Shown: positions 3,496 through 9,807 of the stretch, one piece after another
How the letters are laid out: every line of letters begins with the position of its first letter
Position numbering within the stretch: the stretch's first letter is position 1
DNA from: Lepidodermella squamata
Taxonomy: Eukaryota; Animalia; Gastrotricha
DNA: 64,000 bases
Assembly (NCBI GenBank): GCA_047495785.1
Contig: JBLDXI010000025.1
Coordinates: 1,364,001-1,428,000 of the forward strand
Direction of reading: 5' to 3'
Made by a program: the position numbers and the translations under genes
Notes under the pieces: model-generated
What the model was told of the DNA's origin: nothing
What the model saw: the letters and a program-made list of their open reading frames with translations, nothing else
Database searches by the model: none

Positions 3496-5791
3496 CTACC
3501 AATAGAACTCGCTGCTTTCGTTGTAGTACGAGTAATCAGGCGACATGGCTCGTAGTTGCGACTTGTACCGCTGATCTTCCTCATTGAGAAGCGTGCCTGG
3601 CAATGGGCCGAAATGGTGTGCGATGATGTTGAAAGACGGCCCAGAGTCACCCGCCGCGTTTTGCTCTTCTTCCAGCGTCAGGTCGTTCGGGTCGGTGGGT
3701 ACGACCTCGACGATGTAGTTTTTACCGAAATGGTTGTCCCACCGCTCCTCGCCGTCTTCGAACTGCAGGCAGAAGCAGAACATGACGGCGCCGCCGCATA
3801 TCACCGGCTCGTTGGCGGGCGGCACCGGGGGCAGGGTGCGTTCGAGCACGTAGCGCTGGTACATGACGGCCATCAGCTGCGACGTGGCCATGCCCGCCAG
3901 CGGGATGAGCGTGCAGTCGACGTCGTCGAACGATATCCAGTTGTTCAAGGTGATGCGAGCGAACACTCGCTTCACTCTCTTCACACATTTAACCTGCAAT
4001 GGCAAATTTAATTTTTTAAATTAACGATGACGAAATAATCCTGTTGATCCCAGTCCAACGCTTTTATTTTGGAATAGAGAATTTTTAGCAGAATTTTATC
4101 GCTAGGAAGAGATTTCAAAGAAAATTGAATAATAGCGAATTAGACCATGTTTTACTATCAACTCCGATTAGATTGAATTCGCTGTTATTCCTGATATTTT
4201 CAGGATTTATAAACAGTAATAGTATATGTTACTAATTATAAGAAATTGCTGCATTTAACCCAGTTTCCCGAATGATAATAGTATACTCATGCTTCAAATA
4301 TGAGTTCAACATGTTGTGAGTTTCGCTTCACTCTATTACAGCAACAGTCATTCCAATCATCAAAAATTTTGCATTTCAACCTTCTTTCTTCATCGATACC
4401 TGGTTTCTAAATTATGAAATGATTTTCGCTGTTTTAATTTTTTCACAGATTCACACCCACAGATTCACGGAATAACTCATGAGATACTGGAAAGCAATCC
4501 TCGCTCTAGTCTTAAATATTCAGCTACAAAAGCACATTTTCCCTCAAATTCGATAAATCGATGACATGCGACCAAACCTTGGAATGAAAACTAGTGAACT
4601 CAGTTTTTCAGGCCATATATTAATTTTATCGTAAGATCATTTTCGAAAATTCATCCTCCAAGGCCCAAATCGTCGTTTAATTTTCAGCTATTACCCACAT
4701 TTCCACGGTGAATGATTCATTCCATCAATTAGGCTGGGCTGCGAATTTCTTCATCTGCAGCTGAAATAAATCTTCTTAGTCAACATGGAAATATTAAGCA
4801 AGACGGCTGTAATATCAGTAGCAACATGAGTATCATGTCAACTGTAAAAACATAACGGCGCGTTACTAGCACTCCATATAGCAGTTTTTTCCATGAGCTT
4901 TCTTCCAGCTAAGCTTATTAATCAAGAATTACTCATAAAGCGCACGTGTTCACGTGAAAGCGAAATGACGCCATAAATCGTGAAAATTCATACCACCCTA
5001 TTCTAGCGGAATAAAGAAGATTGTAAAATAGCCTAAAATGTTGAGACTAAATTGAGTCTGTCTCTTTCATTCAGATGCGTCAAAAACGAGCGGGATGTCA
5101 GCAAACATGAAGTAACTTATGAATAGTTATGAATCATTTCCACATTCAATTTTACAAAAAAATATTATTTAACCACCCGGTCCCAGTAATCGTGAATCAA
5201 ACAGTCACAAAAATAAACAATGTTTCAGGTTTTTATTTCGTGAAAGCAGTAAACAATTCTTACCTTGACTGTGCATATGAGTTTATCGTGATTGAGAAAT
5301 ACATTTTCGGCCAAAATCCACTGCTCCTCGACGTGTCTCGCAAATTCCGAGTAATCATCGATCGGCTGCGTGGCTTCCGTGTACGCCCATTTGCCAGGCG
5401 GTTTTTCGGTCGAATTCGACCTCGACGAGAGCTTGACAGCGCCGAAGAGCGTCGGCTCAACGTAAGACTCTTTCATAATCGCCTTCACGTCCAAATCCGG
5501 CGGAATATCACTCGGCGGGCATTCTTTCGAAGCGTATAAATCCCTGCCCTCGTCATCTGCGAATCGAACGCGAAATTTCGCCGTTCGTCGCGATGATTTC
5601 GCTGAACTCGATCTGCATGAGTGAAGTTGAGACGACGAATCGTTGTGAGGACACTGGCACTCGGCTGATTTCACAGATTCCGGTGATGTTGGAGCGGTGG
5701 AAGCTGACGATTCGGGAGAACTTAGCGCGTCGAATTTCGCTAGCTCTTCAACAACGCGCGCAACGTCGTCCAGCGCAATATCAGCACTCAT
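3496..5791 (-). CDS. PPP1R3: Protein phosphatase 1 glycogen-targeting regulatory subunit (CBM21 domain), 2 exons: 5791-5264, 3993-3496
   Basis: RVxF docking motif KFRVRFADDEG. CBM21 signatures ICTVKVK..RITLNNW and WDNHFGKNY. The AAG|GTAAGA donor and TTGCAG acceptor join in phase 0. Confidence 0.88.
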
Positions 5792-6978
5792 CTCGAGTTG
5801 ATGATAATAGAGAGAAAAACCGAGGCATTTCGTGTGATTAAATAAAAATTGATAAATTGAAAGAAATAAAAAATCACAACGAAATGCGACACGGTTCTAC
5901 TTCAATTTCTCGCCATTTTTTATCACAAAAAATCTAAAATTTAATAACAATTTCGAAGTTAAAAACTGAAATTTGTGTCTTTTTATTGTTGTTTTATTTA
6001 CAGGTTATTTTATCCGGCTGCTGCTGCTATGGGTTATAACGGATAGAATTTGAAGAAGCCGCTGCAAACACCCAAAATTGAAATCGAGCGAGAAGAACAG
6101 TAAACAATTCATGACACGATTGTAATATCTCATAGTAATAAACTTTGGTGGATACTTGTGTGTCTGCCCGGTGTAGCACAACGCGTTTATCTGTGTAACA
6201 TGTACGTGTAATAGGGGCAATCAAGAATTACAGAGAAAAAATCACCGCTGATGAACAATAATAAAGACTTTTTCAATCATAATATTTCATCGGGTTTAAG
6301 AATTATTACCATATTTTTAAATCGCAGCAGGGCGCACCTCAATGTCTTGCAAGCGGGTATTATTTACACGTAGATATATTCATAGGTTTTGCTATCACTA
6401 TTATTTCAGTTTTTTCCATCAATAACACAGAACTCACGAACCAGCCTCAATTTTTGATGTAAGGCCAAAATCATCATTACATTTATCAACCAGTCATGGC
6501 GGACGAACAATAGATTGGGAAATAAGAAAGAGAAAAATATATGTAGAAGAGATTATTTTTCATCATCATGTGTGTGTGCTTTGAATTTTGATTTTTAAAC
6601 ACAGCCGCCGCAATTTTTGCAACGAGAAATTCAATTTTTATTGAATAACAATTCTTTGTTGTTGCCGTGCAGTATTGAAAACTTCATTAGACCGTGCCCA
6701 AAAAAATTATGCGGCGAATAAGAGATATTTTTGTATTATCAAAGAAGAAGGACAGAAATTCGGAGAAATAATAATAAGAAGTCTAGAAAAAATCGATAAC
6801 AACTTGCCCGCAGTAATTTAACGATCACGTGTATAGCTGCAGCAATAATCTACTAGTACCTGTCTATATTATTTCGAGCCGAATTAAGTTGAGAATAATT
6901 ATCGATCAATATTTCCGAGAACAAGGAAACAAACAAGCGTTAATAATTATGACTCAAAAATGAAAAACCAGTCGCCTA

Positions 6979-7018
6979 ATCCGACATGTTTCAGCTTTTA
7001 TTCAGCCATCTTCAGGGT
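6979..7018 (-). ncRNA. Mirror copy of the minimal hammerhead ribozyme (sense with respect to SLC20 transcription)
   Basis: Exact reverse complement of 7301-7340 within the palindrome. Confidence 0.72.
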
Positions 7019-7300
7019 CTGACAACAAGTAAGGAAATCAACAATCAAGTTTCGAGACTAATATTAAAACAAGTTTACCAATTTTGTCACCAATCGTTTT
7101 TTTCCGTGTAATTATCAAAATTAATCAAAAGAATCAAAAACAGAAATCATGATCTATTTTAATAGATCATGATTTCTGTTTTTGATTCTTTTGATTAATT
7201 TTGATAATTACACGGAAAAAAACGATTGGTGACAAAATTGGTAAACTTGTTTTAATATTAGTCTCGAAACTTGATTGTTGATTTCCTTACTTGTTGTCAG

Positions 7301-7340
7301 ACCCTGAAGATGGCTGAATAAAAGCTGAAACATGTCGGAT
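7301..7340 (+). ncRNA. Minimal type I hammerhead ribozyme (Penelope-type)
   Basis: Sequence cc-CTGAAGA-t-ggct(gaataaa)agct-GAAAC-at-GTC-gg: conserved core, short stem II, palindromic stem III (ACATGT), GUC cleavage triplet ending at 7336, and cc/gg stem I. Confidence 0.75.
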
Positions 7341-7491
7341 TAGGCGACTGGTTTTTCATTTTTGAGTCATAATTATGATATCGCTTTTCCATCAAATCCT
7401 ACGACTAAAAAGCGTTAATAAATCAGATCTGAGAACATCCACCTTAATAACAGAAAAAAATAACGGTTTTTTCCACGTAATATTAATTTCT

Positions 7492-9807
7492 TCACAGGAA
7501 GGCGGGTAGTACAGTAGTGGTAGAACTAGCATTCATGAATTGTGTCACATTTGAGGCATTAAGTGATGACGGGTCGAAGCCCTCATTTGCAGCCGGGTAG
7601 AAAATTTGACGAAGCGCGGCCATGACAGCGGCAGAGAACGCCCCCGACGCCGGTACGGTGATGAACCACGCGAGGACGATATTTCGGAAAATATGCCAGT
7701 CCACCTGATTGCGGCCTCGACACAGCCCGACGAATACAACAGAACCAACCTTGCAGTGGGTTGTCGAAACCGGAATGCCGATCTGCGACGCGAATAACAC
7801 CGTGGTCGCTGCCCCGATTTCAATGCTGAAACCGCTGGGCGGGGTTACCTGCGTCAAATCGTTACCGACAGTTTCGATAACACGCCGGCCCAACACCCAC
7901 AATCCGACTGAAATTCCGAAACCGCCAAACAGTAGAATCCACCACTCAGCTCGAGCATTCGTCGGCAACGCACCGAACATGTGCAACTGGTAAATTCCGA
8001 TAACAGGGCCCACTGCGTTAGAAACATCATTACCACCATGCGCGAAAGCTCCGAAACACGCAGTTAGAATTTGAAGAAAAGCGAACAACCGCAACACGTC
8101 CGGCCATTCATTCACATCGTTATCCATCCTCGAGCTAGCAACAGACCTGGCTGAAGTCGCAGACCGGGCCGACTGGGTGCGCTTCCTCCTGCCAAGATCA
8201 CGACCGATGAATGACGTCACAGTTAACTGATTCTCGTCTTCGTAGTTATGATGGTGATGCATGTGGTGATTCGCCTCGTGGTCGTGTTCAGCAGCGACTA
8301 ATGTGACAGTTTTAGTCGCTGGAATCGCCGCTTCCGAGTTGGAAACCGGCTCGTCCACCTCACGATTTTTCAACGAAGCCTGCAGACTCGTACCAGGGAC
8401 AATCGTCGTCTGTTGCTGCTCATCTTCGACTTCATCTTGTTCATAGAATTTCGCTGATTTCTTCTCAATAGCCGAGACGACAGTAACCAGAGTTTCGCTC
8501 GAATTCGCGACTGATGGCGTCAAGGAGGACAGGATATCTTGGTGCTTCCGCGGCCCTAATTCCGGGCTATTCGGCGGAGTTGTAGCGTTGCTACTCGCTG
8601 TCATGTACTTTTGAGCAGCCGTATTCAAACTAGGCGTTTTTCCAGCCCGAGGCGTGACAAGCAACGGGGTTGACGAGCCGGAAACTTCGGCGGATGAAGC
8701 CGTTGATGAGGTAACAAAACCGCTAGGGATTCCGCAGTATTCACTGCTCATTTGTTGCTCGAGCGGGATTCCAGTCAGTGCTCCATTCAAACCCATCGAA
8801 AATTTACCTGAATCCGATTGCGACTGGCGCCGCGACGGTCCGAGCGATACAGCTGTAACTGTAATCGCCTTGCCACCACCGTTTTCCCGCTCGATTTTCA
8901 CCGATGAAGTGTTAGCAACTTCATTAGATTCAGCAACGGCCGGTAAAGGCTTCTTCTCGACCTCTGACTTGGCTGAGGTATCTTTTTCATCGACATTAGT
9001 AATAGCCGGAGGTTTCGAAGTGTGATCATTTGCGTCGTCATCCAACGCCGACATTGCTACCGATTGATTTCTCGTGAGGATAATGTGCCGTTTAAGTCGA
9101 GGGGCAACAATAAAACGAACAATGCCAGCAGCAATAAGACCGACGCCAAGACTGATAATCAAGGCGCCCCACCACGGCACAACATGGAAATATAAAATCT
9201 CAGGGCCATCCAGCACCACCGAGAAACAGTTGACAGCAAATGTCACCGAGTAGAAGAGAGGAAGTAGCAAAATTCCGCGGTTCAGTTGTTTCTTATGGTC
9301 CTTGATTTTCAAAATTGTAAAGCGAACGAAAGAATATAACCCGGCTGACACAATGCCAGATAATACGGGCGAGATGAACCATGACGCCGCGATTTTGCCA
9401 AGAACCCACCACCTCACACCTTCGGCACCTTTCACCACGAGAGTGAAGCCAACAACAGCGCCGACAATGCTGTGAGTTCCAGAAACCGGTAGTTTGAACA
9501 AAGTGGCAATCAGTAGCCACAAGCAAGCGCCTATCAATGATGACAGGTAACCCAATAAGAGGAGTTCGACGGCATCTTGGTAAAGGGCGATATCAATAAT
9601 GCCTTTCGAGATCGTCGAAGAGACTTTTGCGCCAACCAAAACAGAACCAGCTGTTTCGAATATCGTTGCTAATATACACGCTGCTTTTAGCGTTAACACT
9701 TTAGATCCAACAGATGTGCCGAACGAATTGGCGACGTCGTTAGCGCCAATACTGAAGGCTAGCGCAAAGCCGATAATAAACCCAACAATAACAATCCAAA
9801 GAACCAT
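7492..9807 (-). CDS. SLC20A1: Sodium-dependent phosphate transporter, SLC20/PiT family, intronless CDS (771 aa)
   Basis: N-terminal GANDVANSFGT and C-terminal HGGNDVSNAVGP signatures, plus PVSGTHSIVG and PVSTTHCKVG, with a large central hydrophilic loop. Assignment to paralog A1 versus A2 is not resolvable. Confidence 0.95.
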   Translation of the reverse strand: MVLWIVIVGFIIGFALAFSIGANDVANSFGTSVGSKVLTLKAACILATIFETAGSVLVGAKVSSTISKGIIDIALYQDAVELLLLGYLSSLIGACLWLLIATLFKLPVSGTHSIVGAVVGFTLVVKGAEGVRWWVLGKIAASWFISPVLSGIVSAGLYSFVRFTILKIKDHKKQLNRGILLLPLFYSVTFAVNCFSVVLDGPEILYFHVVPWWGALIISLGVGLIAAGIVRFIVAPRLKRHIILTRNQSVAMSALDDDANDHTSKPPAITNVDEKDTSAKSEVEKKPLPAVAESNEVANTSSVKIERENGGGKAITVTAVSLGPSRRQSQSDSGKFSMGLNGALTGIPLEQQMSSEYCGIPSGFVTSSTASSAEVSGSSTPLLVTPRAGKTPSLNTAAQKYMTASSNATTPPNSPELGPRKHQDILSSLTPSVANSSETLVTVVSAIEKKSAKFYEQDEVEDEQQQTTIVPGTSLQASLKNREVDEPVSNSEAAIPATKTVTLVAAEHDHEANHHMHHHHNYEDENQLTVTSFIGRDLGRRKRTQSARSATSARSVASSRMDNDVNEWPDVLRLFAFLQILTACFGAFAHGGNDVSNAVGPVIGIYQLHMFGALPTNARAEWWILLFGGFGISVGLWVLGRRVIETVGNDLTQVTPPSGFSIEIGAATTVLFASQIGIPVSTTHCKVGSVVFVGLCRGRNQVDWHIFRNIVLAWFITVPASGAFSAAVMAALRQIFYPAANEGFDPSSLNASNVTQFMNASSTTTVLPAFL

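Follow-up and report, generated by a model that had tools for sequence, protein, structure and literature searches.

A hairpin insert beside an SLC20 phosphate transporter gene of Lepidodermella squamata is very probably a young, one-tailed inverted dimer of a Penelope-like element

Introduction

Endonuclease-bearing (EN+) Penelope-like elements (PLEs) are recognized by a reverse transcriptase (RT) with a GIY-YIG nuclease C-terminal to it. The structure of EN+ PLE insertions is reportedly covered, among other sources, by Evgen'ev and Arkhipova in 2005. In this work, we analyzed a hairpin insert in the gastrotrich Lepidodermella squamata, which lies just downstream of an SLC20/PiT phosphate transporter gene in a stretch of 64,000 nucleotides (assembly GCA_047495785.1, contig JBLDXI010000025.1, positions 1,364,001–1,428,000). 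We refer to this entire stretch as the window, and coordinates are those of the window unless another locus is named. The insert is very probably a young, solo inverted dimer, 5'-truncated and derived from the 3' end of an EN+ PLE, comprising only sequence that resembles the pseudo-long terminal repeat (pLTR) of these elements.

Several features of PLE integration have been described in other animals. PLE insertions carry an inverted, 5'-truncated copy and a tail of 30–40 bp at one end (Craig et al., 2021, PMC8557442). Arkhipova et al. (2013, PMC3846280) likewise described pLTRs in inverted orientation, a tail of 31 bp and junctions with palindromes, which they read as self-priming. A purified PLE protein was subsequently shown to cut and extend both target strands, with reverse transcription starting at two adjacent internal sites of an AC-rich stem-loop and the tail corresponding to the sequence between them (Frangieh et al., 2024, PMC11167929). 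PLEs moreover contain minimal hammerhead ribozymes without a closed helix III, which are dimer-dependent and show low activity in vitro (Cervera and de la Pena, 2014, PMC4209133), and the hammerhead of the one PLE tested by Frangieh et al. cleaved only with the help of protein (PMC11167929).

Results and discussion

Insert structure and family census

A repeat search of the window delineated two arms of 216 nt that are 100% complementary and separated by a 2-nt spacer. The individual parts of the insert and its borders are as follows:

6935–6946, no strand: target-site duplication on the left, AAGCGTTAATAA; the final 4 nt (6943–6946) also form the start of the inverted arm
6943–7158, minus strand: tail-less inverted arm, representing the non-coding (pLTR-like) 3' region of a PLE, whose sense orientation here is that of the minus strand
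7159–7160, no strand: spacer TT at the centre of the palindrome, continuing the sense arm, with a 4-nt microhomology (TATT) at the junction
7161–7376, plus strand: sense arm, the final 216 nt of the PLE before the tail
7377–7409, plus strand: PLE tail of 33 nt, unpaired and on a single side, with 22 identical copies genome-wide
7410–7421, no strand: right copy of the target-site duplication, AAGCGTTAATAA, from sequence reading and repeat search

We give the insert as 475 bp (6947–7409). The perfect 216-bp hairpin that a first-pass annotation of this DNA had described is thus present as stated. Its 12-bp target-site duplication was likewise recovered as a 12-mer on both sides, but the true length is 10–12 bp, as the first two As may belong to the variable 3' end of the element (...CTAAAAATTG in other copies). 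The same annotation let the hairpin begin 70 nt past the SLC20 stop codon; this distance holds exactly for the right duplication (intervening sequence 7422–7491), whereas the hairpin itself is set apart from the duplication by the 33-nt tail. The last 21 nt of the tail are 81% A+C (17/21). The sense arm starts 21 nt past the stop codon of the open reading frame (ORF) seen in longer family copies, and the outer end of the opposite arm coincides with an internal, tail-less end position found in other copies; the coding part of the element is absent. An ATG at 7374–7376 (+) opens a frame that remains open through the entire tail to 7409 (MISLFHQILRLK) and, by parallel with rotifer PLEs, the ORF of the element may have its first codons in the tail.

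Searching the 121-Mb assembly with the sense arm plus tail (7161–7409, 249 nt) yielded 50 matches, many of them arranged as inverted pairs, and nine spanned the full query at 97–100% identity. The longest family copy, L031 (L031:1009–3901, G000:C48:312708–315600), is a perfect palindrome of 2.9 kb, its arms measuring 1444 nt and its spacer 5 nt. Both arms contain an open 399-aa ORF composed of the C-terminal part of an RT followed by GIY-YIG. In the Pfam scans used for protein identification, GIY-YIG passed its cut-off (22.9 vs 22.6 bits), and RVT_1 remained below threshold (20.8 bits), as the ORF includes just the C-terminal half of the RT. The coding capacity of such longer copies supports the initial assignment to Penelope elements, and the proposal of a very recent insertion is borne out by the 97–100% identity between copies, the identical arms and the perfect duplication. 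Throughout, family copies were compared pairwise rather than via a consensus.

The tail provided a convenient handle on the rest of the family, its exact 33-nt sequence occurring 22 times in the genome and 27 times when up to three mismatches were allowed. When aligned to the longest copy, all 27 loci (L059–L085) proved to be 5'-truncated, each at a different point, and all end at the tail; in most of them, at most five more element bases (...CTAAAAATTG) follow, with tails reaching up to ~38 nt. About 16 of the 27 copies adjoin an inverted, tail-less arm that ends at reference positions 1433–1447, the tail starting at 1443. The family has two discrete 3' end positions, at ~1439 and ~1477 of the reference copy. 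The spacers between the arms measure 0–61 nt in all dimers except one (911 nt), and every inverted dimer has exactly one tail, with two tails seen in 0 of ~16. Three solo copies end at the tail-less site, and solo copies with a tail also occur. At least 14 copies are bordered by their own target duplication of 10–14 bp. The flanks of the window insert are single-copy, and a search of the assembly returned neither an empty-site allele nor a second copy of these flanks. Together with the individual breakpoints and duplications across the family, the single-copy flanks identify the window insert as a real, independent insertion.

These characteristics closely match EN+ PLEs of the clades Penelope/Poseidon, Neptune and Nematis. 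Shared features are the single ORF with RT and then C-terminal GIY-YIG in longer copies, the heavy 5' truncation, the head-to-head inverted copy with its palindromic junction, the one-sided tail of 33–38 nt, the short and variable target duplications and the hammerhead downstream of the ORF. Unlike those elements, the window copy is pLTR-like only and non-coding, and the master copy of its family was not found. The family is previously undescribed, and the insert is what a known mechanism ordinarily produces.

The genome also contains a full-length PLE from a different family, which represents a complete textbook unit (L057:1863–6212, G000:C2:1970362–1974711). Its direct pLTRs are 156 nt long, 100% identical and 2593 nt apart, they flank an 832-aa RT ORF, and each of them carries a hammerhead. 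An inverted copy of 1564 nt adjoins the unit, with a 34-nt tail at its outer end. The ORF has an in-frame AUG within the hammerhead core (CUG-AUG-AUG), resembling the in vitro reconstituted Poseidon element PAc of Anolis carolinensis, in which the ORF AUG also lies inside the core (PMC11167929). Unlike in PAc, the candidate AUG of the window's family (7374) is found 38 nt past the predicted cleavage site.

Junctions and integration

The junctions between the arms offer a view of how the dimers may have arisen. At the window's junction point, the reference copy reads ...TATTTT|AATAGATC..., so that the spacer TT of the window continues the sense, tail-bearing arm; the tetranucleotide TATT is common to both arms. 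This arrangement fits a complementary DNA (cDNA) whose 3' end (…AATA) paired with TATT six nt back and was then extended on antisense DNA. The loop continues the tail-bearing arm in at least two junctions, the window copy and L062, and the tail-less arm in five others (L059, L060, L067, L071 and L076). Given this mixed orientation, one snap-back of a tail-bearing cDNA cannot account for all copies. A model in which both strands are primed and synthesis then jumps from one cDNA to the other would account for them; it leaves unexplained why both truncation points fall 0–61 nt apart. Across the family, junctions show microhomologies of 2–4 nt or untemplated runs. The spacer of the L067 dimer (L067:1322–1353, G000:C16) contains an untemplated run of 16 T, GG and 7 T, and the junction of L065 contains short tandem duplications (CAGAAGAT twice), both of which suggest polymerase slippage during the template switch.

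In the order of steps that we infer, a nicked AT-rich target would prime reverse transcription from the outer of the two internal start sites, giving rise to the tail-bearing arm, and cDNA synthesis would halt 21 nt short of the ORF. The 3' end of the cDNA would then prime on complementary DNA via the 4-nt microhomology (TATT/AATA), this DNA being either the same cDNA (snap-back) or another cDNA, synthesized from the opposite strand of the target. The head-to-head copy would end at the inner start site and hence lack a tail, and repair would leave the target duplication of 10–12 bp. An insertion of this kind would be dead on arrival, with only the 3' non-coding, pLTR-like region of the PLE integrated.

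Both the AC-rich tail and the pair of 3' end positions in this family fit the two-start-site picture developed for PAc (PMC11167929). As in PAc, RT would start at two neighboring internal sites separated by the length of the tail (copies here end at ~1439 or ~1477), the initiation region is AC-rich and the targets are AT-rich. The two systems differ in that the start sites of PAc were the same for top and bottom strands, whereas the dimers of the window's family carry one tail each. A further parallel is LINE-1 twin priming, or 5' inversion, where both target strands may prime and produce inverted segments within a single insertion; LINE-1, however, inverts a different, adjacent part of the element, whereas the arms in the window are one and the same sequence and form a true palindrome. 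The ~16 very young one-tailed dimers could discriminate between snap-back and two-strand priming in PLE integration. With its young, near-identical copies and two 3' ends ~35 nt apart, the family constitutes a clean natural data set on this poorly understood process.

Hammerhead motif

The palindrome contains a minimal hammerhead motif on each strand, as determined by direct reading and pattern search:

7302–7338, plus strand: minimal hammerhead motif, predicted cleavage at 7336|7337
6981–7017, minus strand (sense strand of SLC20): mirror hammerhead motif, predicted cleavage at 6983|6982, loop II AAUAAA at 7002–6997

The cores are located at 7304–7336 (+) and, mirrored, at 7015–6983 (-), and here the first-pass annotation, which had placed a minimal hammerhead with an AATAAA loop II on each strand, was right. 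In the plus-strand motif, helix I is formed by CC/GG, and the core segment C3–A9 (CUGAAGA, 7304–7310) is followed by the unpaired U7311. Helix II consists of 4 bp (GGCU/AGCU, 7312–7315 with 7323–7326) and is capped by the loop GAAUAAA. The GAAA at 7327–7330 leads into the palindromic helix III (ACAUGU, 7330–7335), U7335 representing U16.1 and position 7336 C17. The catalytic core is complete (C3–A9, G12–A14, A15.1, U16.1, H17).

For a comparative analysis, we ran a pattern search over all fetched PLE loci, in which CUGANGA, GAAA and a helix II with 3 or more bp were the sole requirements. The search pattern thus partly preselected helix II but included neither helix I nor the additional base following A9 nor the palindrome of helix III. 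Besides one apparent chance match, the search returned 14 variants resembling a hammerhead; the source loci of these 14 are similar to the element's ORF (27–78% amino-acid identity) or to its 3' end (80–91% DNA identity). All 12 variants that were aligned have a palindromic helix III (ACAUGU, ACGCGU or ACGU) and an unpaired U or C between A9 and 10.1. Helix I covaries, occurring as CC/GG, GC/GC, GAC/GUC, UGC/GCA and AGU/ACU. In the alignment, 85.5% of cells are paired, compared to 18–36% with slid partners, and compensatory changes, seen in helices I and II, affect 6/10 pairs; 0/500 shuffles attained the score of the real alignment. This covariation across PLE families of one genome argues that the motif is a genuine, conserved PLE hammerhead.

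The predicted ribozyme resembles the metazoan PLE hammerheads of Cervera and de la Pena (PMC4209133) in its type-I topology, the complete CUGANGA...GAAA...UH core, the unpaired nucleotide between A9 and 10.1, the helix I of 2–4 bp and the palindromic helix III (ACAUGU), which implies dimers. Dual motifs on opposite strands, 100–700 bp apart, are also known from that work and match the window hairpin. Unlike the published motifs, the window's family has a G10.1-U11.1 wobble, a helix II of 4 bp (vs 6–8 bp in the PLEs of Schistosoma and Drosophila virilis) and AAUAAA in loop II. The family adds a G-U variant to the PLE minimal hammerheads, accompanied by covariation from sister families. During the life cycle of the element, the hammerhead would act as a protein-assisted dimer in the processing of multimeric transcripts; in the window insert, it would be a passenger, with one copy per strand.

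The AAUAAA of loop II (alignment columns 24–30) is present in the window's family and in five of the six nearest variants, the sixth (L049) having AAUUAA, and is missing from the four distant ones. A second role as poly(A) signal of the element is possible, although inserted copies run ~75 nt past this sequence.

The SLC20 gene

The gene upstream of the insert is encoded on the opposite strand to the tail-bearing arm:

7492–9807, minus strand: single-exon ORF of 771 aa for a phosphate transporter of the SLC20/PiT type (PHO4 family), ending in a stop codon at 7494–7492

The ORF matches the Pfam profile PHO4 (PF01384) over its full length (1–350 of 350) at 1.1e-125. In the first-pass annotation, AATAAA had been reported to be absent between the SLC20 stop and the element; indeed, the 70 nt contain neither AATAAA nor ATTAAA on the SLC20 strand. 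In the reconstructed empty site, the first AATAAA on this strand follows at +374 from the stop codon, and the target site may thus have been within the native SLC20 3' untranslated region (UTR). Reading along the SLC20 strand, the insert adds three signals, namely an ATTAAA at +235 in the antisense arm, an ATTAAA at +328 at the hairpin centre and an AATAAA at +489 in the sense arm, where it forms part of the hammerhead. Among the eight long ORFs of the window, a sample too small for calibration, AATAAA occurs within 60 nt past the stop in two and ATTAAA at 20 nt in one, and the remaining five are without a signal inside 200 nt. Judging from these ORFs, canonical poly(A) signals appear to be an unreliable and poor guide to UTR ends in this genome. 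The sequence is compatible with an insert residing within the SLC20 3'UTR, and we regard the chances of this as about even. If transcribed, the insert is predicted to zip into a 215-bp duplex (-373.4 kcal/mol, z = -44).

Alternative explanations

The near-complete palindrome and the target duplication bear a superficial resemblance to a non-autonomous DNA transposon with long terminal inverted repeats, that is, a miniature inverted-repeat transposable element or foldback element. Such an origin has next to nothing in its favor once the family is considered, given that the outer ends are constant while the inner breakpoints vary from copy to copy, the additional tail of 33–38 nt is always on one side, longer copies code for RT and GIY-YIG and for no transposase, solo, non-palindromic 5'-truncated copies exist, and the length of the duplication is variable (10–14 bp). 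The family census led us to reject this reading, and it also led us to reject the only slightly less improbable case of an assembly artefact, for example a fold-back chimeric read. Chimeric long reads can yield perfect palindromes, and inverted PLE structures are known to trouble assemblers (PMC8557442, PMC3846280). However, the palindrome in question is part of a contig-internal segment of only 475 bp located between single-copy flanks, has a perfect target duplication on both sides and recurs with like design at ~16 independent loci, each with its own breakpoint and duplication. The insert is best described as a PLE dimer.

More weight has to be given to the idea that the ancestral PLE motif is real and the hammerhead-like motif of the window's family an inactive relic, which we consider unlikely, although clearly less so than the alternatives above. 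Several observations point in this direction and, together with a negative Rfam scan and the mixed loop orientation at the junctions, weigh against our interpretation. The conserved G10.1-C11.1 pair, found in 9/12 variants and kept by a sister family of 80% identity, is replaced in the window's family by the wobble G7312-U7326, in combination with the 4-bp helix II. The scan with hammerhead models that had been proposed as a check came out negative, as the Rfam models (types I, II and III, HH9 and HH10) were unmatched in 2.5 kb and in 86 nt, at gathering score or E<=10; no other Rfam family reached its gathering score either. A covariance model built from the four most distant variants scores the motif at only 14.8 bits (E ~0.1), its two window copies nevertheless ranking first within the 64 kb. 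For monomer and dimer alike, energy prediction prefers a fold other than the hammerhead, which is put at -2.5 kcal/mol compared to a minimum of -9.5 kcal/mol. Finally, the assembly search found no full-length master copy of the family, the longest copy being the palindrome on contig C48. On the other hand, every position of the catalytic core is intact, and the G-U wobble preserves both the pairing and G10.1. Within the fetched loci, the intact motif of the family occurs 85 times, with full identity across the 51 nt that were compared; the copies being young, this says little about selection. Neither the covariance-model score nor the Rfam result is decisive, and a miss by Rfam is expected for minimal hammerheads of PLEs, whose helix III is not closed and whose discovery required a special descriptor (PMC4209133). 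It is also conceivable, if rather improbable, that the hairpin acts inside the SLC20 3'UTR, as a double-stranded RNA substrate for small interfering RNAs or editing, as a new poly(A) site or as a self-cleavage site. The signal-free 70 nt downstream of the stop codon, the distant first AATAAA of the empty site, the three signals brought in by the insert and the predicted 215-bp duplex all speak for such a role. In contrast, short UTRs do occur in the window, where a near signal is present in 3/8 long ORFs, and with five ORFs lacking a signal in 200 nt, the signals offer little guidance. A like structure is moreover present at ~16 unrelated loci, leaving nothing specific to SLC20. As for the self-cleavage of the mRNA near 6983 that the first-pass annotation had envisaged, it is improbable, because the transcript would have a single hammerhead copy, whereas the motif needs a dimer, because the hammerhead's own fold is energetically unfavored, and because complete pairing with the complementary sequence of the opposite arm would sequester the motif in the -373 kcal/mol hairpin. 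The low in vitro activity of PLE hammerheads and the protein dependence seen in one PLE tested (PMC4209133, PMC11167929) argue in the same direction.

Little can be claimed for SLC20 itself beyond the presence of a recent transposon scar a short way downstream of this transporter gene. A double-stranded RNA fate or premature polyadenylation of the SLC20 transcript is possible, and we mention it as speculation. As a long shot, SLC20 transcription might read through the insert and the 215-bp RNA hairpin be diced into small RNAs that silence the young PLE family in trans. If true, a hairpin-RNA gene would have just been born at this locus, carried by the mRNA of a housekeeping transporter.

Neighboring sequences

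Sub-threshold Rfam matches were obtained at 7103–7216, all centred on the tip of the palindrome: MIR837 (56 bits; gathering score 117), Plastid-psbA-4, SpF43 and lactis-plasmid. We rejected them as real RNAs and consider them artefacts of the perfect hairpin. Downstream of the insert, on the same strand as SLC20, we noted a CBM_21 ORF resembling a glycogen-targeting PP1 subunit (3496–4005, -) and a 188-aa ORF without a Pfam match (5225–5791, -). The two may be exons of one gene, with its ATG ~1.1 kb beyond the insert.

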